The notes below the pieces were generated by a model, which saw only the letters and a list, made by a program, of their open reading frames with translations, was not told where the DNA came from and did not search any database. Source: Chrysemys picta bellii (Eukaryota). Taken from it: a stretch of 64,000 nt of DNA. The translations under genes and the position numbers were made by a program. Location: positions 26,722,001-26,786,000 of the forward strand of contig NC_088794.1 in NCBI RefSeq assembly GCF_011386835.1. The letters are read 5' to 3'. Every line of letters starts with the position of its first letter. The stretch's first letter is position 1. Of this stretch, positions 1 to 18,100 are shown piece by piece.

Positions 1-69
1 TCCCTGCCCCCCTCATTGAAGCTTCCGGGAAAGGTGTGCAGGATTACTGCCCTGGGAACTCCAGGGCAC

Positions 70-845
70 CACTGGACATGGGGCTGGCTGGAGACAGGGC
101 AGGGGCTGACTGGAGGTAGGGTCTGGCTGCAGGCAGGGGAAGGGATGAGGGGCTGGCTGGAGACAGGGGTGTGTGCGGTGGGCTGGCTGGCTTCAGGCAG
201 GGCCGCAGGGGTGTGTGGCATGGGTTGGCAGGGCTGGAGACAGAGGAGTGCGGGACTGGCTGGCTTCAGGCAGGGGTGTGCGGCAGGGGTTGGCTGGAAA
301 CAGGGCAGAGGGTGCGGGGCTGGCTACAGGCAGGGCAGGGGGTGCAGGGCTGGTGTGGGCAGGGCATAGGGTGCAGGGCTGGTGCGGGCAGGGGTGTGTG
401 TGGGGCTGGCTGGCTTCAGGAAGGGCTGCAGGGGGGTGCGGCAGGGGCTGGCTGTGGGCAGGGGGTGCAGGGCTGGCTGCAGGCAGTAGCAGGGCAGGGG
501 GGGCAGGGCTGGTGCGGGCAGGGGGTGTGGCAGGGGCTGGCTGCGGGCAGGGGGTGCGGGGCTGGCTGGAGACGGGCTGGCTGGAGGCAGGGCAGGGGGT
601 GCGGGACTGGCTGGAGACGGGGCAGGGGGTGCGGGGCTGGCTAGAGATGGGCTGGTGTGGGCAGGGTAGGAGGTGCGGGGCTGGCTGGAGACAGGGCAGG
701 GGATGTGGGGTTGGCTAGAGATGGGCTTGCTGCGGGCAGGGCAGGGGGTGCGGGGCTGGAGGCAGGGTAGGGGGTGCAGCAGGGGCTGGCTGCGGGCAGG
801 GCAGGGGGTGTGGGGCTGGTGCAGGCAGGGGGTGCGGGTACAGCC
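70..845 (+). repeat. G-rich degenerate minisatellite (~30-bp unit GGGGCTGGCTGCGGGCAGGGCAGGGGGTGC)
   Basis: Visible tandem recurrence and strong G/C skew; lies in fascin-like intron 4. Confidence 0.85.
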
Positions 846-879
846 CACCCTGTACGGTGAGTGCCCCCTCCTCCTCCCT

Positions 880-1289
880 CCCCCACTGGGGTAGCAGCAG
901 CAGCAGCCGCCCGTGGCTTGGGGGCTATTTAAAGGGCCCGGGGCTCCCCTGCTTCCACTGCCCCAGCCCTGTATATAGCCAAGGGAGCCCTGGGGAAGCG
1001 GTGGGGCTCCAGTGGCTATTTAAAGGGCCAGGGCGGTAGAAGCAACGGGAGCCCTGGACTTTTTAAATAGCCCCCAGAGCTCTGCAGCCCTACCCCAGAG
1101 CTCCAGCAGTGGGGCTCTGGTGGGAATTTAAAGGGCCTGGGGCTCAAGCCCCTGCTGGGAGCCCTGGGTCCTTTAAATTGCCCCCTGGGGAAGCCGGGCC
1201 ACCCTGGTACCGGGGCTTGGGCGCGGGGCCCTTTTAGGCACGGGGCCCGATTCAGGGGAATTGGTTGAATTGGCCTAAAGCCGGCCCTG
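880..1289. mobile_element. hAT-like non-autonomous element, one end only
   Basis: End GCCGGCCCTG at 1280-1289 (reverse complement CAGGGCCGGC); repeated TTTAAAGGGCC subterminal motifs; other end not seen. Confidence 0.45.
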
Positions 1290-1588
1290 GGCCCCGAAGC
1301 AAGGGGATTTAACCCCTAACTTGCTGGCACCCTCTGAATAGGCCACTCCTGGAACGGGGCACACTCTAGCAGCTGGGATTGGATAGCAGGGCAGGGGAGA
1401 GCCAGGGCCAGCCTGCCCTGTGCTGGCAGTTGCCTACATCCCTGTCCCAGCGATGTGTTCGCCCCCTGCTGGTAGATCGCCAGAGCTGCACTGCGGCAGG
1501 CAGCATGCTGCAGGCCAAAGCCGGTGGTTCTGTCGATCTCCCCCCATCGGGGGATCTGTGCCAATCCCCTGGCTCCGGCCACACTCAC

Positions 1589-1707
1589 CACAGCAAGATA
1601 GGTGCCGGAGGAGCTGCGAAAGCAGGCCTGCTTAGTGACATCGTTCAGCAGCAGCTGGAAAATCTCCGTGTTGCCGACGGACGTGGCATTGGCATAGATG
1701 TCAGCCC
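1589..1707 (-). CDS. fascin-like coding exon 4 (GADIYANA...GTYLAV)
   Basis: acceptor ctgcccacag|GG; donor GTG|GTGAGT; 119 nt. Confidence 0.88.
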
Positions 1708-4700
1708 CTGTGGGCAGCAAGAGACACACAGTAAAAAGGCTGGCAGTGTGGTGCCAGCCTGGAAAGTCAATAACGCCCTCCCCCAGGGCCCAGAAGGGCC
1801 GGTATGTGTATCACTGCTGCCCTCTGCTGGCTGCAGCTGGACCTACTCCAGTCAACTTCCATCCACCACAGCAGATGGGGACACAGCCCTGTGAAGAGAT
1901 CCCAAGGGCTAACTGGGACCCTGTGGCTGCCCACATAATGCAGAGCCCCCTTGAAAATATGAATGGAGGGTAATTAACAATGGGATACCTGCCTGAGGCT
2001 GTAGGCAGACAGCCTGAAACAACAGCTAGGAAAGGAAGTGCCGGCTGATCCGGCAGCTCTATGGACTGTTAAGCATGAAACCTACTGACTATCTGTCAAT
2101 GCCAAACCCCATGGGCCATGTTCAACATGTGGGGGTAGCCCAGTATACAATGCTTTACACAAAATAAACAGCACAGTGCAGATTTCCACATTCCACTGGG
2201 TGCCATATTGCAAACGACTTGTATCTTTCTCAGAGACCACCGGATTTTGCTGCAGAATTCAGATCACACCGTAGTTTAATACAGATGACAACAATAGGGG
2301 CCTGAACCAAGATCAGGCCCCATTGTGCTAGGGGCTGTATAGACACAGTGACAGCCCCTGCCCTACAGATCTGACTGTTTCACTACACAAACAGGGGAGA
2401 AAGGAAGGAACGTTCTGCACATAGGGAACAGAGGCCTAGAGAGATGCAGTGATTTGAGCTAGGTCCCGCAGGGAGCCGGGAAATGAACCCAGATCCAGTC
2501 CCAGTCCAGTGCTGCAACCACTAGGCCTTGTATGTGCAGAGTGCCCCAGAATACATGGGGCCTGGCTGCCAGGTCTGCTCCTGCTGCAGCACGTGTGCCC
2601 GTCTGGAGAGCAGCCCAGGGCGGGGGGGGGGGGGGGGGGAGAGTTGGAGTGGGAATAGCAGCAGCCAGCAGGGCAAGTGGTGCCATCTGGATGCAGCACC
2701 GGGTTCCCCACCCTGCCCCGCTCACCTGGCCTGCAGCAGACAAAGCGGCCCCCGGCGAAGGTGCGCAGCGAGACCTGTGCAGCACTGGGCTCCAGAGCAA
2801 AGAGCTCGTCGCGCCCCGGCTTGTCCGTCTTGAAGGTCTTGACGATGCCCTCGCGCCCAGTCAGGTACCTGCCATCCGTGTCCCGCAGGGCCAGCAGGCC
2901 ACCCCGCAGCTCCAGGGAGTAGAGCGTCTGAGGGGACAGCTCGGCCTGTAGTGAGCCGTCGGCAGCCAGGAGGCTCCCAGCCCCGCTCCGCAGCCCGTAC
3001 TTCTTCTCTAGAGACGGGGCAGGGAGGCAACATTAGAGAGAGAGTCATCCTGGCACCGGGGCACCATGGCCCAGTGCTGCTGGCCTAACAGCCCTCCCAG
3101 CTGTACAGGATCCGAGCCTCTGGCAATCCCAGTGATGCTGCAGGCCCGTGGGACACATGCAATGGGCGAGCATGCACCCCACCTCATCTACACGTATATT
3201 TCCTATCCCACCTCAGTGCCCTGGCCTCCCACATCCTTCCTTGCACCCTCAGATCCTTCCCCACCCACCCCAGCGCCCAATACCCCACTCCCCTGCTCAC
3301 ATCTTCCCCCTTCCCTCCGATCTGCTCCCACATGGCACCCCCCTGGTCCCCCACCCCCTTACTCTCCAGTACCTCCCCTCAGCTCCCCTCACCCCAGCAG
3401 GGCAGAGCACCCCTGAGGAAGCGGGGAGGGGCTGCCCACCTTTGAGGTCAAAGTGGAGGGTGATGACGGCCTCGGGCCCCCAGGGCAGATCGCGGTCGCA
3501 GCGCATGTGCCCGGTCTGCTGGTCGCAGCGCATGTAGCGCTGCTTGCCGGGGTTCAGCATGTGCCCGTTGGGGTGCTGGGCCAAGTGCAGGCTCCACTTC
3601 TCGCCCTCACTCACGGTCTGGGCAAAGCAGGTGACGTTGTCCTCGGCCCCGCCCAGGTAGCGCTGGGAGAGCTCGCACTGCAGGGACACCTGCCGGGAGG
3701 GGCAGCTTGTCAGTGCCAGGGCAGGGTGGGTACAGACATGTCTTCCCTGTGGGCAAAGCACATACCCAAGCAAGGAGGGGCCGGTGCCAGCAGGGCTCGG
3801 GGGGCAGTGCTGGCTCCTCCAGTGCAGACCCCAGCACAGGAATCGAGGGCCCCGGTTTGCGTGTGGGAGCCTGGGGGAAGCCACAGGAAGACGTGGGTGT
3901 GTTGGTACATGGAGGAGAGAAGCCGGCACTGTCACATGAGCCACGCTCAGCAGCCAGAGGGGCTGGGCTGGCTGGAAGAGGGTCCAGGAGAAGGGTACAT
4001 AGACCTCTCCCACCTGGGCTGCAGTGCAGCAAGGGAGCCCCAGTGGCACCCACATCCTTACCTTCTGTGGGACCAGGGACCTGCAGGATCCCCCATTTCC
4101 TTGGTAAAGTGGAGGTGGGAAATACTCAGGGCTCGTATGTCTGAGGAGAGGATGTCCGGGCCTTAGAGCACAGGAGCGCCCCCAGCTGGGTCCATGCTGA
4201 CACGTGAGCTTTGACAGCTCGTCTTCTGCCTGCTCTTCAGCCCCTGGCTCCGTCCGACCCATGGGCAGGACCCGCTTGACCCCAAGACCCCTGAGCAATC
4301 ATGCCCCTGGCTCCGCTTCAGCCCACATCCAAAGTGACTCAGTCAGTCTCAGCTCAGGGGCTCCACCCACCCCTCATGCTGGCCAGGTGGCTTGTTTGGA
4401 GGCTCCCAGCCACAGCATCTGAGACATGGGCACCTGCGCCACCAGGTTGAGATGCCTACAACTTATCTGCCCCAGACCCCTCAGCAGCCGGCCCGCGGGA
4501 AGGCTTTTGGTCACTACCAGCTCCAGCCAGACTCCAGTCACTGGCCTGGAGGCAAAAAGTGCCTCCCCATCCCTGGAGCTTACAGTGGGACCAGCACCCT
4601 AAAAGCGGGCCCCGAGCCAACCGGCCCTCAGGGAGCACCCAGTCACCTCCAGCCAGTGACACAGCGACTGTGCCCACAGAAGGGGGATTTCTTGGGGGCT

Positions 4701-5613
4701 GTGTGGCCCCCTGGTGGCTGCAGGGTAGAGGATCTAAGCAGGCACAGGACAAACTTCCTTCCCAACACACAAATCGGGGGGGACGGGGGAACTGAGATGA
4801 GCCCACCCATCCTGTGTTGTAGAGACCCACTAATGGTGGGTTGAGGCCATGGTCACTCTCCAATATAGTGCGGTGCCCCTAAGGCCTTGGCCACAGCAGA
4901 GAGGTCGCTTGGTGGGAGAGCTAATTCTGACTTGACATGGCACCCGAGCTCATCTGCACTTCCCCATGCCCCGGCTCAGTGCAAGGACCCCCACTGATCT
5001 GTGGGGAGCCCCTTTGTCAGCTGAGCCCTAGCCAGCTTTGCTCCTCCCCCAGTTGTCAGGTCCCCCTAGCCGGGGTGCTGGGAGATTGCCCATAGGGAGG
5101 GCAGGGGACTGCGGGCTCTACCATCAGATGGGCTGATATGGCAGCAGTATGTGGGTGCTAGGTGCTGGGGCAGGTGGGGGCTCACACCTTGCCCTCAGGT
5201 GCTGCTGCAGCAGGAGGGGGGCCTGGGGTCAGTGGAGCTGGTGCCTGGGGTGGGGGGCAATGGAGAGTTCTGGGTGGGTGGAGTTTGCACACCTTGCCAT
5301 CTGGGTACTGCCGCAGCAGGAAGAGGGCACCTGGGCCCGGGCTCTCCTGGTCACAGGTGACTTTGCCGTTGGGATCGGCCGCCAGGAAGCGCTGCAGCCA
5401 GCTGAGCAGATGCAGTCTCTGCCCGCTCTCCTCAGCCTGCCCGGCCGCTCCGGCTCCCTGTGAGGGCACGAAGCGGAGCATCCAGACCTGGCGGAGCCGC
5501 AGCACCAAGCCCGTGGCCACCACCTGGAAGCGGAAGGGCTCGGCGCTCAGGTACCGGTTGGCGGCATTGATAAGGCCACAGGGCAGCGAGGTGGGTACAG
5601 TGGAGTCAGCCAT
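1589..5613 (-). CDS. Fascin-family actin-bundling protein, divergent paralogue, 3'-partial; join(5613-5293,3689-3440,3007-2726,1707-1589), 324 aa visible
   Basis: Four GT-AG exons join in frame. Motifs GLINAANRYLSAEPFRFQV, RYLGGAEDNVTCFAQTV, CDRDLPWG, KPGRDELFALE and EIFQLLL match fascin beta-trefoil repeats. Remaining exons were not found in 1-1588, so they lie beyond the left edge. Confidence 0.88.
2726..3007 (-). CDS. fascin-like coding exon 3 (EKKYGLRS...FVCCRP)
   Basis: acceptor ccccgtctctag|AG; donor CCAG|GTGAGC; 282 nt, frame preserved. Confidence 0.9.
3440..3689 (-). CDS. fascin-like coding exon 2 (VSLQCELSQRYLGG...HFDLK)
   Basis: acceptor ctcccggcag|GTG; donor AAAG|GTGGGC, phase 1. 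Confidence 0.88.
5293..5613 (-). CDS. fascin-like coding exon 1 (MADSTVPT...YPDGK)
   Basis: ATG at 5613; donor AAG|GTGTGC, phase 0. Confidence 0.85.
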
Positions 5614-6650
5614 GGGGCTCTGATCACTCCCACTCGTCCCACCTGGGCTGCTATATGGCACTGGGACTGCTCAGACACGCCCACAACAATGGGCACCAGG
5701 CAACTGGGCCGTCACTGCATAGGCCCCACCCCACAGCACTAGCCCCGCCCACTCCACAGCTCCACCCCCACACATCTAGCTCCACTTACACCCTGGCTCC
5801 ACCCCCACCTTATGAGCCACTCAGGCGCTCATGGCTTCACCCCCAACATGGACACGTCACTAACGGAGCAGCATCCACAATGGAGGGGCCATAGCTGTGC
5901 TCCATCCCTACAACCTAGGGGGATGTTACACTTGCTGGTAAGGGCTTTGCCCCCAGCCCTCTCAGGGACCACAGCCCAACCCCCACCCTGCGTTAGGAGC
6001 AGAACCCCTCCCTCAAGCCCTCCAGCTGCAGCCTTTGACTCCAACCCCAAGCGCTGCTAGGCTAAGCTGGTGGCAGGTAAGGACACCCTGTCCCAGGCCC
6101 CTGGGGGAGGGAACAGAAGACAGTGAAGCCATTGAGAACGAGAGTGCACATGCCACCCCAGGGCGAGCGCATCAGCCAGCTCCCCTCTTCCTGCAGGTTC
6201 CAGAACATCTCTGACAGCCCTGATTACTGGGCGGATGGAAAGCTGGAGGGCCAATAGCTGACATCAGAGCCATGGCATCTCATGGCCCCACAGAAGTGCT
6301 GGAAGAGTACAAGATTGAGCCTTGCAAGACTTCACAAGGGAGGGCCTTAGAGTACCAGCCGCAGCTGCCCATCCTCCTGCGATCCCCAGAATGACCAGAG
6401 TCAGTTCACGCTGCCCCAGCCACTCTGGCCTGGGCTCGCAGGCAGGACTTCACACTCATCAGGGTGAAAGGCTGCAGACTGAGCAGTGTGAGTACAGACA
6501 CCTGACCTCTGGCCACAGCCTAAAGCTCAGTGCTACCACAGCTGGTCTGAAGGGCACAAGGCTAGGGGATGCAGTCTGATTGCCACTGGCACTTCAGCCA
6601 TACCTGGGAAAGAGAGGCCTGAAAGGGCAGCGGCTTACAAGACTGGCACC

Positions 6651-9714: not shown

Positions 9715-11883
9715 TAAAACAGCTCACACCCCATTTATTATTTAAAATATTTTGTTACAAAAGGAAAAAAAAGAAAACATACAATGCAGTATAAAAGATT
9801 GACAACGTCATCAAGTTTATTACACAATTTCCAACCTATCAGAAAGAGACAAAAATCAAATCACCGAGAACTGGGGGAGGGGAATTGGGGCGTTGCTTTT
9901 TATTTTATTTTTATCATCCCCCCTCCCACCACTATTCTGAAATAAACTAAAAATTTGTGTCATTACGTAAAAAAACAGAACACTCTCCTGTCAAAGGGTT
10001 TTCTGGTATTTTACACTTCTTTTTTAATGTCACCTCACTTTAAGTTTCCGTTGTTTTTTTTTCCATTTTCTTTTTAAAAAGACATCCAGAGCTGGCCGTT
10101 GCTCACCGATCACAGTTCTTAGGGAGGTGTCACTTCACTTCGCCAGCCTCCAGGCAGGCTGTGCACTCTCGTCCCCTGCCACCCTCTCTGATGTGTCCAA
10201 CTGGAGACCCCTGCTGGGGGGATGGTGCCCAGGTTTTGCCCAGCTGTGTCCACAACTTGCCAGGAGGGCCACGCTGAATGGCATGAAATGCAGCAGGTGG
10301 TTGCTATCCTCAGTCTTACATAAAGGTGCAGGCTCTGGAGACTACAGGTCCCAGCATACAATGTGTTATAGCTTGAGCTAAGTGACTGGAGAACTGCATG
10401 CTGGGATGTGCAGTCTCCACAGTCTGCCGCTCAGATGGGCACAGTCATGCGACACATGCAGGCTGCTCTCTGGCCACCTGTACCCTAGAGCATCCTTTGC
10501 TCGAGGGAACATGGCTCCTTCCACACCACCTATCCTACCAGCCTTCAAGAATCACCAGCTGAAGGCTGTGGTGGAAATAGTGGTTATGTTTCCCCCTGGC
10601 CCTTCAGGCATCACACTGTTGGGCACAATCAGCCCCATGTGCTGGAACAGGCACCAAGACTCCTTAGCTAGATGTAGACCAACTCTCAGCCACCCCAAAC
10701 TCTTTGCTCACCGTCACGCACCATAGAGCAATAGCAAGCAGCAGTGCTGTCTAAAGAAACCTCCCACCCAGCACTCGATTGGGAGCTCCCATTCCTAGAG
10801 CGTTTATGAAGAGGCAGGAGTCCCCACCAGAGTTCTCAATCCCTGGAATCAATGCACCTCCCACCACACAAAAATGCTAAGCAGCTCGCCAGGTTATCAG
10901 TTGTTGGGCTCATCCAGCCAGCCCCCAGCCCACCCCATCTCCATCCACCGATATCACAACACTCAAGTCTCTCCCCATGCCGCTTCCTCTAAAACAAGGA
11001 AGGCAGCCTCTCTGGGAGGAGGCTGGCTCTGAAGAAACAGGTTGCTGGGGCTTGCGGTAGGGAAAAACGTGAACTGGAACGGTTATTGCATGAGATCAGC
11101 ATGGAGAGCCAGAGGCATTGAGTCCAGCTGAGAGGGGCCACCTCTGTTCCGGACAAGCCCCCTAGAGGAGCCAGGGCAGAATGCAGAGAACTCAGAAGCG
11201 CCTACAGGAACGGCAACTGGGAGCAGAAAAAGGTGATGGGAAGCAGCAGCCAGCCTGCTCTCCATGAGGCGGGGGAAGAGGAAATGCTGTTATCTAAGAT
11301 GAGTATAATGGGCCAGACAAGCCAGGCCTGGAACTGGTTGGGAGAAGGGATCGCACTCCTCAAGAGAGCACCCCCACACAGGACGAGAAGACAGTGCACC
11401 ATGGGAGGACATGGATACTGGCCCCAGTAAGCCAAGCAGGCCAGGCGCCAGATACCACGCAGGGATATCTGTGCCCCCACCTCCAACCCTCCCCAGCACA
11501 CACGAGGGTGATGGATTCCCTTCCAGCTGTCCCCGAAAGGGCCACGGAGAGGAAGGAGCTCACAGGCTTCCATGGAAAAGCACCATTTCTCTTTGGGTCC
11601 AAGTATCCGTGGACTGGAGCACTCCCTGCTCACAGTGGCCCCGACGCTATCCCTCCCTAACTCCACGTCTTCCAGCATTTCCCCAGAAAGCAGCAGCAGC
11701 GAGTGTGGGTCCCGAGGCCACCGTGTGCCAGCTGGAGTCCCGCAGGCGACGTGGCTTTCCCTGGGTGCCTGGAAGGAGCTGGGGGCAGTGGGGAGGAGAG
11801 GGGTGGAGCGGCCTCCGTCCTTCAGTCCTGATCGAGGTGAGGAGATACAAGTCCATTAAAAACACTTACTGCCAACCAAACTC
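9715..11883 (-). other. CPSF7: CPSF7 terminal non-coding exon (3'UTR)
   Basis: Acceptor tgttctgtcccttccag|GAG at 11884/11883. AATAAA on the - strand at 9904-9909, 9899-9904, 9816-9821 and 9734-9739. The 3' end is approximate. Confidence 0.75.
9734..9821 (-). terminator. CPSF7 tandem polyadenylation signals
   Basis: AATAAA at 9816-9821 and 9734-9739; TGTA at 9821-9824, 9780-9783 and 9756-9759; U-rich context. Confidence 0.7.
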
Positions 11884-14108: not shown

Positions 14109-14969
14109 AACTATTGGGCGTGGGGACATGCTATTGACACTTGCATCCTAAAAATCCAACAAGCTTTCGTACTCGACCCAGCTACCACCATGTGGGCAAA
14201 GCCACTTCTCCCCAGCCAAGCCACCCACCAACAGCAGAGCTCACTGCCCCTTGGCTCTGAAGATGGTTAACAGGAAGTGAGAACACTGCAGGGTGCTGTA
14301 ATCAGCCAGTGAGGGACTTTGGCAGGCTAACCACAGAAGGGAATTCCATAGCTGGAGGATACCTGACCAAGGAAAGCCCCGTCCTCACACTGCCCGCACT
14401 GAACCTAGAAAGGAGGACCGAGCGCAAAGGGCAAGGAGCTCGCTCTCTGCTGTTCGGTGTGGGCCGTGTAGGTTCACAGCCTGCTACAGATCAATCAAGT
14501 GAAGACACGGGAAGGAGAGGAACGGGGCTGGAATTGACTCTGCTGATGCATGTGAACGAGTAGCAGCACCAAGCTGGCTGCAGTTTCAATGGAAAACCAC
14601 CAATGAGGGACTTCAGTGCCGGTTATTCAGCAGCCATCAGAGGAGATTAAGGGACATTCCCTTCTCTTCTCCTCTGGGGCTTTCCCTCTTGGAACACCCG
14701 CTGCGGGCAATGAAAGATCATTTGTTGCTTGAGATCCGGAGGGTGGCCACTGACTGTGTAGTTAGAACACTAACTGGAGGGGCTGCCATGTTAGCCATGG
14801 AGAGTCAACTGCTAAAAGCCAGGGGAAATAGACTGCTTAACGTCCAGTCTGCACCCCCAGGAGGTTGCCACGTCCCTCTAAGGGAAGGGGTGCTCCATCA
14901 GCAGCAGGTAGATGGCCTCGCCGCACAAGGGAGATAGAAGGAGCAGGGCCTCGGGCCAGCTCACCTTTC

Positions 14970-15138
14970 TCAGTGGTGCCGGTCCCTTTCTCTGTCTCTG
15001 TCCCGATGTCTCTCATGCTCCCGGTTCCTTTCTTGGAAATAGTCCTCGTGCCGATCCTCATTATGGAGCGGGTCCCGGTGCCTCCTGCTGCTCTCGCGGG
15101 ACCGACTGGGCGACCTCTCCCGAGACCGGTGTCTTTTT
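14970..15138 (-). CDS. CPSF7: CPSF7 exon 9 (last coding); exon ends 14965, 5 nt after TGA
   Basis: [13 protein letters not shown]...RDRHH*; TGA GAAAG|GTGAGC. Confidence 0.95.
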
Positions 15139-18100
15139 CTGAAAGACAAGACTAAGTGCTGAGTATCTCCCAAGCCGTGCTCCCCTCCAGATCTTCAGAC
15201 AAAGAGGGGCTGCTGCCTCCAACTCAGGTCTCCCCAAAGGATAGTGAGCTGTGCCTGCCCCCCAAATCTCCAAAGGCCCAAGATGAGAGCAAGCAGTTCT
15301 TCCCTCTTACTCTGGTTGGCAAGGATTTACCTGGAGGAGCTGCTGCTGGCACCCATGCTGTAGGACTTGGCTTCGATCCCATGAAGACAATCCTTGAGGG
15401 AGGAGATGAGGACGCGGCACCGCTCGTCGTTGGCTACGCGGGACTGTTTGATAACGGCGATGGCCGTGAGCAGGGTCTCTATGGCATCACTGTAATCCCC
15501 TGCAGGAGATGAGAAGGGTGAGGAAAAGGACCAGGCAGGGGACGGAGGATGACGGGTGTCAGGGGGCCACTGTTACCTGCGCTGGCTCCAGACACCGCTT
15601 TGGAAATGGCACTGCTGGAAATCGCTCGGTTCCTGTTCATGATCTCCTCGAACTCGGCTTCGCTCACTGCGGGAGGCAGTGGGCCCAGCTCTCGACTGCA
15701 CAGAACAGAGCACGCGCCTGTCAGCCGGGCATGGGGAGAAAGCTCCCACCCCCGGGGACTGACCCGACAGGTGCTGAAGGTCAATGCCCACCTGGCAGAG
15801 CTCCCCAGGGGCACCAGCCAGGGGGCATCCCGGGCACACTACCCACCTGGCAGGGAGCTCCCCAGGGCACCAACCGGGGGCATCCCAGGCTCACTGCCCA
15901 CCTGGCAGAGGTTCCCCGGGACACCCACCTGGCACCCCATAGCAACACCTTTTGCCCTCTTGGGGCCCAGTAGGCCCAGATCTGGCTGACACACGGTTAC
16001 GACAGTGCCGATGTCTCCTGCCCCCACGATCTCAGCTCGTTCTTTCTAAATCCAGCAGAGGCTGCAGCTCATAGACTCATAGACTTTAAAGGTCAGATGC
16101 ACCAGCCAGCACCCAGGAAAGAATTCTCTGTAGTAACTCAGATCCCACCCCATCTAACATCCCATCACAGATCATTGGGCATATTTACCTGCTAATAATC
16201 AAAGATCAATTAATTGCCAAAATTAGGCTATCCCATCATACTGCTCTCACCTGCTGTGGTTATAGGCTGCAGAGGTCTTGTAGGTGTCCGGCGGGGGGGC
16301 CAATGCTGCATTTGGCGGGGGGAAGAAGGCAGGGTTGAGGTGCAGGGCGGGAGGGACTGCCCCTGGAGGTGGCACGGCCAGGTGTGGGGGCAGTCGAGGA
16401 GGAGGGGGCATTAGATGCTGGTAGTGGATTCCTGGGGGGGGAGGTGGCACTCCAAAGCTGGAGGAGAGAGGTGGTGGGGGAGGCATCGGGGGAGGGGGCA
16501 GGGCCATGAGGGGCATGGCGGCAGGGGGGCGGTTAAAGAAAGACAGCACGGAAGGGGGCTTCTCCACACGAGGGGGCGGCACAGCATTCTCCGTCGGCGT
16601 GGCTCGGCCATCCATCGAATCCCAGGAGTCCCGGGAGTGAGCCCTCGGTGGCACCCCTGTTAGCCAACAGAGAAGGGGAATGGCTTGTGAGCATGGGGGT
16701 GACTTCACCCATAGGAAAGCCACCTGAAGAGAGCCAGCTGGTGCGGCAGCCCCCACAAGCCTGGGGAGGGAGGAAGGAGGCGGGGGATGGAATGACCCAG
16801 TGACCGAGGGAGGGATATATCGTCCCCTCGACCCTGCACCAGCCCCCATCACCTCCCCGTCTCGAGATCGGGGCACCCGTCTCCCACGGCCACACGCCTG
16901 ATTTCAGCGGAGCCTGAGGTGCCAAGAGAAAGATCCAGCCAGCCAAACGTAGCCTCCACTTCCACGGGCCTCAGCCAGGGCGTGATTGCTCTCCACCAAG
17001 GTATCAGGAAAGCGTCAAAGGCAGTGCCCCGGTGGCGAACACAGGGGATGGAAGTTGCAAAGCAAACTGATTACCTGGGCAGAAGCCAAAAGCCCTGACA
17101 AATGGCAAGAGGCCTCAGCGGAGAGGCCACCGGGCACTGTGTGAGTCAGAGCTTGCCTGTTTGTTGGTTAATACAGCTGGTTTGGGCCTGCACAGAGGCA
17201 GAGACTGAAATCCTGCCAATAAGAGACCCTGACCCAGAAAGCCTGCAATCCCCTACGGGAGTGGATCTGGAAAGGGCTGATGGGACTATAAGGTGAACAA
17301 ACTTAGAGGGACATAGCTTGGATCCAAAACTCCCATGGCTACCAAGTATTGGAGAGCAAGTAACCAGATGCTGACCATGAGAGAGTCTGAGGGGGTTAGA
17401 TCTGCAGCAGCCATGCAGATGTTGCTCATCTGCAGCCATGGGAACAAGCCAAAGGAGATTACTACTACAAGGAAACTTTCCCTTCTCTAGCCCCTTTCAG
17501 CCCAGAATCAAAGGGCTGGAGACACACTGAGGCCTTGCCTGCCCCGGTGAGTGGTCCTGTAACAGCCACTGGTGCAAACCCCTTAGTGTCCATGCTAAAC
17601 TGCTATGAGCTGGCCCGGTTTCATCCAGGTAGAAGCTCCATTAATGCCCGGTGTTGGTAAGCTCCATCAGGGTGAGCACAGCTACACCAATGGCTATAGC
17701 CAGGGCAATTCCCCAGTGCAGACAAAGCCACAGCCTCACAACAGCCCTGTGAGGTAAGGGACAGAACAGAGGAACCTCTCACCTGCCACTGAAATGCAGC
17801 CACCTCCATGGCAGAAGGTGGCAGCGGTCTGACAGTGCAGAGCACTTCTTTTTGACAATTCAGGATGGGCAACGGAAAATTTGGTGTTCCACTGCAGTTG
17901 CCTAGGGTGCGTGAAGGCTGCAGGACAGTCACCCAGTTGGAATTTGTCCAGGGCACTGGGGGCAGTAATTCTCCTCGTACGAAACATGCCATGGGATCGA
18001 CAATGACCACAGGTGGCCAGTTTCGTCATGTGTGTCCCTGGAAAGATGGCACCTCCAGCTGCACAGCGCCCCCTAGCTGGGGCGGGGCTGGGACGCTGGG

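Follow-up and report, generated by a model that had tools for sequence, protein, structure and literature searches.

The question raised by this locus is which vertebrate fascin it encodes. In a stretch of 64,000 nucleotides from the turtle Chrysemys picta bellii (assembly GCF_011386835.1, contig NC_088794.1, positions 26,722,001 to 26,786,000; hereafter ‘the window’, in whose coordinates positions are given), a coding frame of the fascin family lies on the minus strand at 1589-5613, beyond the 3' end of CPSF7. To our knowledge, reviews of the family give vertebrates three fascins (FSCN1, FSCN2 and FSCN3), and functional work on filopodia, stereocilia, photoreceptors and spermatids has been framed on that set of three. 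The original prediction offered two readings of the gene: a fourth lineage retained in turtles, or a translocated and diverged gene of FSCN3 type. We consider it very probable that the gene is real and functional and that it represents a fourth fascin lineage, for which we use the name FSCN-L, separate from FSCN1, FSCN2 and FSCN3.

A fourth vertebrate fascin lineage

A profile of the reptile members retrieved a graded series of matches: squamates, turtles and the alligator, then the archaic frogs Ascaphus (47% identity) and Discoglossus, next sharks, rays, Callorhinchus and sturgeon (41-42%), and after them FSCN1 and FSCN2 (31-36%). Mammalian FSCN3 was not reached by this word search; a full HMMER scan returned 1048 relatives, with cluster names that include marsupial, rodent and frog fascin-3.

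In a maximum-likelihood tree of 58 rows, calculated under the site-heterogeneous LG+C20 posterior mean site frequency (PMSF) model, cartilaginous fishes, sturgeon, Ascaphus, Discoglossus, squamates, turtles and the alligator form one FSCN-L clade (support 100/100), with an internal branching that follows the species tree. This clade lies outside those of FSCN1 (100/100), FSCN2 (100/99) and FSCN3 (100/100, from coelacanth to mammals), and the vertebrate fascins as a whole are monophyletic against amphioxus and protostome outgroups (98/96). Four representatives that resemble mammalian FSCN1 and come from environmental contigs (P0145, P0146, P0148 and P0174), possibly human-derived, were left out of the alignments and trees. 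The existence of a fourth fascin lineage is firm. The protein falls within neither FSCN2 nor FSCN3, the two placements that had been named beforehand as counting against it, and the idea of a separate lineage is upheld by the fully supported clade, by coexistence with FSCN3 and by synteny; what did not stand is its restriction to turtles, as members are also found in crocodilians, squamates, Ascaphus, Discoglossus, sturgeon and cartilaginous fishes.

Where FSCN-L attaches to the other three is a finer question. The tree joins it to FSCN3 as a sister pair (97/98), a pairing recovered in both the quick and the careful trees, and groups FSCN1 and FSCN2 with the lamprey sequences (96/93); two duplication rounds would be expected to yield just this ((1,2),(3,L)) shape. 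Several points nevertheless speak against this pairing. The FSCN-L and FSCN3 stems are the two longest in the tree (0.63 and 1.26 changes per column), such that long-branch attraction may possibly lie behind it; in the approximately unbiased (AU) test, a tree with FSCN-L and FSCN2 as one clade is not clearly rejected (difference in log-likelihood 18.7, p 0.065); and FSCN-L has higher identity to FSCN1 and FSCN2 (36-38%) than to FSCN3 (22-27%). We also take human 11q12.2 (CPSF7, DAGLA, MYRF) to be paralogous to 7p22 (FSCN1, DAGLB), 17q25 (FSCN2) and 12q15 (CPSF6, MYRFL). The account in which the fourth lineage is real and closest to FSCN2 (or to the FSCN1/FSCN2 pair), with the FSCN3 pairing an artefact of long branches, is accordingly the alternative that survives best, and we regard it as unlikely though by no means negligible. 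Because both stems are long, the sister of FSCN-L is probable, not certain; on balance, we lean towards FSCN3 as its sister and towards an origin of the two by genome duplication.

An intact, spliced and constrained gene

Is the turtle gene a working one? Three-frame translation and splice-site inspection give a four-exon coding frame on the minus strand that encodes residues 1-324 (107+83+1+93+1+39 = 324) with 0 stops or frameshifts, with canonical AG acceptors and GT donors at all exon edges and with phases of 0, 1, 1 and 0. The features are as follows (joints are those seen in the run contigs described below):

5613-5293, minus strand: coding exon 1; ATG at 5613-5611; residues 1-107 (107 codons); donor GT at 5292-5291, phase 0
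3690..5292, minus strand: intron 1; 1603 nucleotides; lineage-specific; joint 3689/5293
3689-3440, minus strand: coding exon 2; residues 108-190 and the first base of codon 191
3008..3439, minus strand: intron 2; 432 nucleotides, phase 1; lineage-specific; joint 3007/3440
3007-2726, minus strand: coding exon 3; residues 191-284 (part of beta-trefoil 2) and the first base of codon 285
1708..2725, minus strand: intron 3; 1018 nucleotides, phase 1; position common to FSCN3; joint 1707/2726
1707-1589, minus strand: coding exon 4; residues 285-324, with which beta-trefoil 3 starts; gtgagt donor at 1588
1..1588, minus strand: in-window part of intron 4; exons 5-7 lie left of the window
14932..16684, minus strand: last coding exons of CPSF7, matched by tblastx to the CPSF7 end of the Lacerta locus (L001); conserved C-terminal region at 15503-15366

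All four exons match the Pfam Fascin family (PF06268): exon 3 with an expect value (E) of 4.5e-10 and 40 bits (cut-off 23.1), and exons 1, 2 and 4 below the cut-off when each is scanned alone; full-length orthologues carry PF06268 in their precomputed annotation. Among PDB entries, human fascin-1 chains are matched by exons 2 and 3 (E 1e-20 to 1e-22), exon 2 over fascin-1 residues 102-182 (E 4e-22) and exon 3 over residues 185-267 (E 1e-20); exon 2 runs from the last part of beta-trefoil 1 into the first part of trefoil 2, and includes the CFAQ and PWG motifs. Exon 1 carries, within trefoil 1, an 11-residue Gly/Ala-rich insert that the alignment shows only in sauropsids.

With exon 2 as query (as a region of the stop-free open reading frame 3300-4298), the word search returned turtle, alligator and squamate ‘fascin-like’ models. 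Window residues 1-324 are identical to two NCBI automatic models of Chrysemys picta bellii LOC101948111 (‘fascin-like’), namely isoform X3 (P0003) and isoform X4 (P0333), and the latter (500 amino acids) continues through three further exons after the window to an intact, normal fascin C-terminus; the exons expected to the left of the window thus show no disruption in this model. Of this gene, the window carries the first four exons, or the 5' two-thirds. Models of 499-501 amino acids exist for Mauremys, Gopherus, Chelonia, Caretta, Natator, Eretmochelys and Pangshura, and in the side-necked turtle Emydura (locus L007) seven of the seven exons are intact. No fascin-like frame was found by three-frame translation of 1-1588.

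Contigs of four public runs (three organisms, four studies), whose RNA nature is guessed and whose tissues are coded, were mapped to 1500-5700, where they skip the introns at 1708-2725, 3008-3439 and 3690-5292 exactly. The joint 1707/2726 is present in four of the four runs, 3007/3440 in runs X1, X3 and X6, and 3689/5293 in run X6; contigs of runs X3 and X6 extend past 1589 into exon 5, and a spliced contig of one run reaches a word depth of more than 2000. Between them, the splice sites, the identical NCBI models and these spliced contigs bear out the predicted 324-residue, four-exon frame. As to selection, the ratio of non-synonymous to synonymous change (dN/dS, or omega), a check that had been proposed for this gene, was summed exon by exon over 322 codons, with the two split codons left out. 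Between the window and Terrapene, 4 changes are non-synonymous and 12 are synonymous, for an omega of 0.11 (binomial p 4e-5); the value is 0.23 with Emydura and 0.14 with Lacerta.

We have weighed against this the possibility that the gene is a decaying relic in this turtle, either a unitary pseudogene or a transcribed and non-functional remnant. The NCBI isoforms include aberrant forms, with intron 5 kept in isoforms X1 and X3 and a frameshift in isoform X5, and the run contigs hold minor forms, one with intron 1 retained (a contig of run X3), one with exon 5 skipped to give a frame shift (one run) and one with an alternative donor near 4062 (joint 3689/4062, run X1). The non-productive isoforms (intron 1 or intron 5 retained, exon 5 skipped) tell against a working gene, as do two properties of the data: the contigs carry no expression level and come from runs only guessed to be RNA, and exons 5-7 of this Chrysemys genome, lying outside the window, are known through the NCBI model only. 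In Terrapene, moreover, similarity of the last exon (L005:14834 onward) to that of Emydura ends right after ‘...FTLQFV’, at a poly-G/GC tract, and the Terrapene model is without the final 38 residues. Set against the relic account are the full 500-residue frame in Chrysemys and the full frames of many other turtles, an omega of 0.11 within the Emydidae, correct splicing in the contigs of four runs, an AlphaFold model that is confident throughout, and the start of the Terrapene break at a poly-G tract, such that it may be either a lineage-specific lesion or an assembly fault. A pseudogene reading fails because the frame is intact, the contigs are spliced and omega is low, and we hold the relic account to be very improbable: LOC101948111 is intact, expressed and under purifying selection.

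A more general loss of the last exon in turtles, suspected from the odd C-termini of P0003, P0005, P0006 and P0004, was ruled out by intact ends elsewhere: the odd tail of Gopherus is an intact exon read in a shifted frame, Chrysemys isoform X4 and many turtles have the full end, and a lesion is seen in Terrapene only.

Other irregularities concern individual models. Some squamate models (Lacerta L001:11895-11948; Eublepharis P0024) have, between exons 2 and 3, an extra micro-exon of 17-20 residues that is not present in other squamates or in any other group; the Pelodiscus model P0018 is without 25 residues of exon 2; and the Chrysemys isoforms are also named ‘protein singed-like’ and ‘uncharacterized protein’.

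At intron 1, the exon 2 frame continues upstream for a further 203 codons without a stop (open reading frame 3297-4298; within the intron 3690-4298), and isoforms X1 and X5 (P0324/P0325) begin at an ATG at 4262, inside the intron. Taken with the retention of intron 1 and the joint near 4062, this suggests either that there is an internal promoter or that splicing is incomplete. About 105 base pairs into the same intron lies a near-copy, some 40 nucleotides long, of the 3' end of exon 1 and its GT donor (..CCTGCTGC.GCAG.ACC..GGCAAGgtgtg; 5186-5225 against 5290-5330, minus strand), which could be a decoy donor or the product of a small local duplication. In intron 3, the positions 2311-2348 are where many unrelated, deeper contigs from the RNA runs begin or stop, which suggests a high-copy interspersed repeat at about 2270-2463. 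Intron 4 holds a G-rich minisatellite (~98-835; units of ~29-30 base pairs, higher-order periods of 65-159 base pairs), and GC skew is +0.23 across 1-2000. The GC content of the gene in the window is ~62%.

Genomic neighbourhood and the case against FSCN3

On the CPSF7 side, a cluster of minus-strand poly(A) hexamers (four AATAAA and one ATTAAA) lies at 9734-10023, ~4.1 kb upstream of the fascin ATG. As the cluster lies ~5 kb past the last coding exons of CPSF7, it implies a 3' untranslated region of ~5 kb that ends ~4 kb before the fascin ATG. This fits the original prediction, which put the gene about 4 kb downstream of the CPSF7 poly(A) site on the same strand; the site itself is predicted, from hexamers. 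Window and Terrapene sequence are colinear, with 95-97% identity.

The microsynteny between CPSF7 and TMEM216 that had been singled out for comparison recurs well beyond turtles. In Lacerta the order is CPSF7 > FSCN-L > < TMEM216 < TMEM138, and in Terrapene and Emydura FSCN-L > < TMEM216 < TMEM138; in Ascaphus FSCN-L lies two genes from TMEM216; and in Carcharodon the gene that ends immediately upstream of FSCN-L (CPSF6 or CPSF7) has the CPSF6/7 C-terminal domain. From lizard, turtles, frog (on the TMEM216 side) and shark (on the CPSF side), the linkage to CPSF7/TMEM216 is therefore as old as the jawed vertebrates.

Could the gene instead be the turtle's FSCN3 orthologue, which would have left the PAX4/ARF5 neighbourhood for the CPSF7 locus and diverged there? 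FSCN3 is, after all, the nearest lineage in the tree, and the Callorhinchus member is labelled ‘fascin-3’ in the non-redundant protein database (as another case of misnaming, Chelydra fragments are entered as ‘fascin actin-bundling protein 1 (L homeolog)’). The orthologue account is refuted, since single species possess both genes. With an FSCN3 alignment as query, ‘fascin-3’ was recovered from Pelodiscus, Gopherus, Chelonoidis, Eublepharis, Liasis, Varanus, Heteronotia and further species, as well as from Latimeria, Ambystoma and frogs, and all seven of the named reptiles have both FSCN-L and FSCN3; the separate FSCN3 proteins of turtles and squamates include P0303, P0314, P0320, P0304 and P0307, among others. 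Anolis has FSCN1 (P0052) and FSCN-L (P0020). In Pelodiscus, FSCN3 lies tail-to-tail with a PAX/homeobox gene, as human FSCN3 presumably does with PAX4. A tree in which FSCN3 branches late from within tetrapod FSCN-L is rejected by the AU test (p 9e-5), and the low identity to FSCN3 given above, next to that to FSCN1 and FSCN2, points the same way.

Intron positions supply an independent argument. Turtle, lizard (Lacerta), frog (Ascaphus) and sturgeon (Acipenser) FSCN-L have two introns in common, one of phase 0 after residue 107 and one of phase 1 after residue 190. FSCN3 is without these two and has an intron of its own after about residue 35 (frog L004, Pelodiscus L006), and the four 3' introns of FSCN-L occupy the alignment columns of those of FSCN3. 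This pattern speaks against FSCN-L being the FSCN3 orthologue, and against either being a recent DNA copy of the other. (The two extra 5' introns had been expected to be of FSCN3 type, an idea dropped once the FSCN3 exons were mapped in frog and Pelodiscus.) We give next to no credence to a relocated FSCN3, and the translocated FSCN3-type gene of the original prediction is refuted. Least tenable of all, to the point of being virtually discounted, is a recent, fast-evolving, reptile-specific duplicate of FSCN1 or FSCN2, for which the FSCN1/2-like motifs speak, and which is already refuted by orthologues at 41-47% identity with the same neighbours in sharks, chimaera, sturgeon and frogs and by the single clade branching as the species do.

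Predicted fold and actin-binding surface

The AlphaFold model of isoform X4 is all-beta, with a mean predicted local distance difference test score (pLDDT) of 92.4 and a predicted template modelling score (pTM) of 0.88; pLDDT is low only at residues 1-4 and at residues 53-60, the latter being the sauropsid Gly/Ala insert. In Foldseek, the model aligns with 24 human fascin-1 crystal or cryo-electron microscopy chains at template modelling (TM) scores of 0.84-0.93, over ~497 columns and at 38% identity. The model has the four beta-trefoils of a fascin of ~490-500 residues, residues 1-324 being those encoded in the window itself.

We have compared the actin-binding sites that we take to be established in the fascin-1 mutagenesis literature. 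Lysine or arginine is kept at fascin-1 positions 22, 41, 43, 149, 151, 358 and 389 (K22, K41, K43, R151, K358, R389). Because of the fold and these retained basic surface residues, FSCN-L would most likely cross-link parallel actin filaments as other fascins do, and is best regarded as a predicted monomeric cross-linker of filamentous actin (F-actin) of the fascin type. Counting against such a role, other residues of the fascin-1 actin sites are altered: K150 is replaced by Gln and K359 by Pro, and the positions of R398 and K399 are not basic. At the position of fascin-1 Ser39, a target of protein kinase C (PKC), turtle FSCN-L has Val, that of lizards Gln and that of sharks Ile, with Ser kept in Ascaphus and sturgeon; judged from these residues, the sauropsid protein probably has no phosphorylation switch at a Ser39-type site.

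Distribution, origin and significance

Neither of the two protein-database searches (the word search and the full HMMER scan) found FSCN-L in mammals, birds or teleosts, nor in Xenopus, salamander, caecilian, lungfish, coelacanth, gar or bichir. The predicted loss in mammals is in keeping with this, neither search having returned a mammalian member. The evidence of absence is strong for well-annotated mammals and, as the gene is GC-rich, weaker for birds. Two considerations temper the case for loss, namely that absence from mammals, birds and teleosts is read from protein databases and not from genome DNA, and that GC-rich genes are often missing from bird assemblies. We infer that the losses in mammals and birds are true ones.

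As to age, chicken, hamster and ray-finned fishes carry FSCN2, and frogs and sauropsids carry FSCN-L, from which distributions both genes are older than the amniotes. The FSCN3-alignment search returned no FSCN3 from cartilaginous or ray-finned fishes, so that the age of FSCN3 is read from the tree alone. FSCN-L itself is present in both cartilaginous and bony vertebrates, and the tree, rooted by invertebrates, has the ((A,B),(C,D)) form of a quartet produced by two duplication rounds. We suggest that FSCN-L most likely arose as one of four copies from the two early genome duplications of vertebrates, with FSCN3 as its sister copy. Its place between CPSF7 and TMEM216 is older than the split of cartilaginous from bony vertebrates.

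Drawing these threads together, we would propose, with belief only slightly outweighing doubt, that jawed vertebrates began with four fascins; that the fourth, an ‘FSCN4’, is the duplication sister of FSCN3, permanently linked to CPSF7/TMEM216; that it is a constrained and expressed actin bundler without the Ser39 switch; that mammals, birds, teleosts and most amphibians each lost it separately; that it gave rise to a retrogene in sharks; and that it has so far gone undescribed. Our literature searches found no paper that names or analyses the FSCN-L lineage: its gene models are already in the databases as ‘fascin-like’ or under wrong names, and the lineage itself is undescribed in the papers found.

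A fourth paralogue as old as the other three would complete the set of four genome-duplication copies, with lineage-specific losses, and FSCN-L explains such mislabelled entries as the chimaera ‘fascin-3’ and the Chelydra ‘fascin 1 L homeolog’. Reptiles, sharks and sturgeon gain an unstudied protein with a predicted actin-bundling function, and the CPSF7-TMEM216 interval, a ciliopathy locus with a gene order remodelled in amniotes, becomes a probable site of gene loss in mammals. This is a refinement of the gene family and not a new mechanism.

Comparison with the known fascins

Second, intronless FSCN-L copies are present in the sharks Scyliorhinus, Cetorhinus and Carcharodon (P0280, P0122 and P0279). 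These span 1464 base pairs (487 codons and a stop), are kept across shark orders and nest with the cartilaginous fishes inside the FSCN-L clade (100/100); they differ from the CPSF-linked parent in having no introns and in lying on another chromosome, and are on both grounds FSCN-L retrocopies.

FSCN1 (human 1DFC, 3LLP and 8VO5) resembles FSCN-L in full-length identity (38%), in fold (TM ~0.9) and in size (493 against 500 amino acids), and stands in a separate clade. FSCN-L differs from it in the two extra introns, which fall where FSCN1 and FSCN2 presumably have a single large first coding exon, in the 11-residue insert of sauropsids, and in the replacement of Ser39 in turtles, lizards and sharks. 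FSCN2, the fascin of retina and hair cells (fascin-2a/2b in fishes), is 36-38% identical to FSCN-L, yet its sequences from chicken, hamster, bichir and teleosts make up a clade of their own, without FSCN-L.

The closest comparison, if the tree is right, is with FSCN3, the testis fascin, which shares with FSCN-L the sister position, the four-trefoil architecture and the four 3' intron positions. The two differ in sequence, with identity of only 22-27%, in their 5' introns and in their neighbours, a PAX gene for FSCN3 and CPSF7/TMEM216 for FSCN-L. FSCN3 also has by far the longer stem branch, and their histories of retention part company: FSCN3 is seen here in sarcopterygians only and is kept in mammals, whereas FSCN-L is present in cartilaginous fishes and sturgeon as well.

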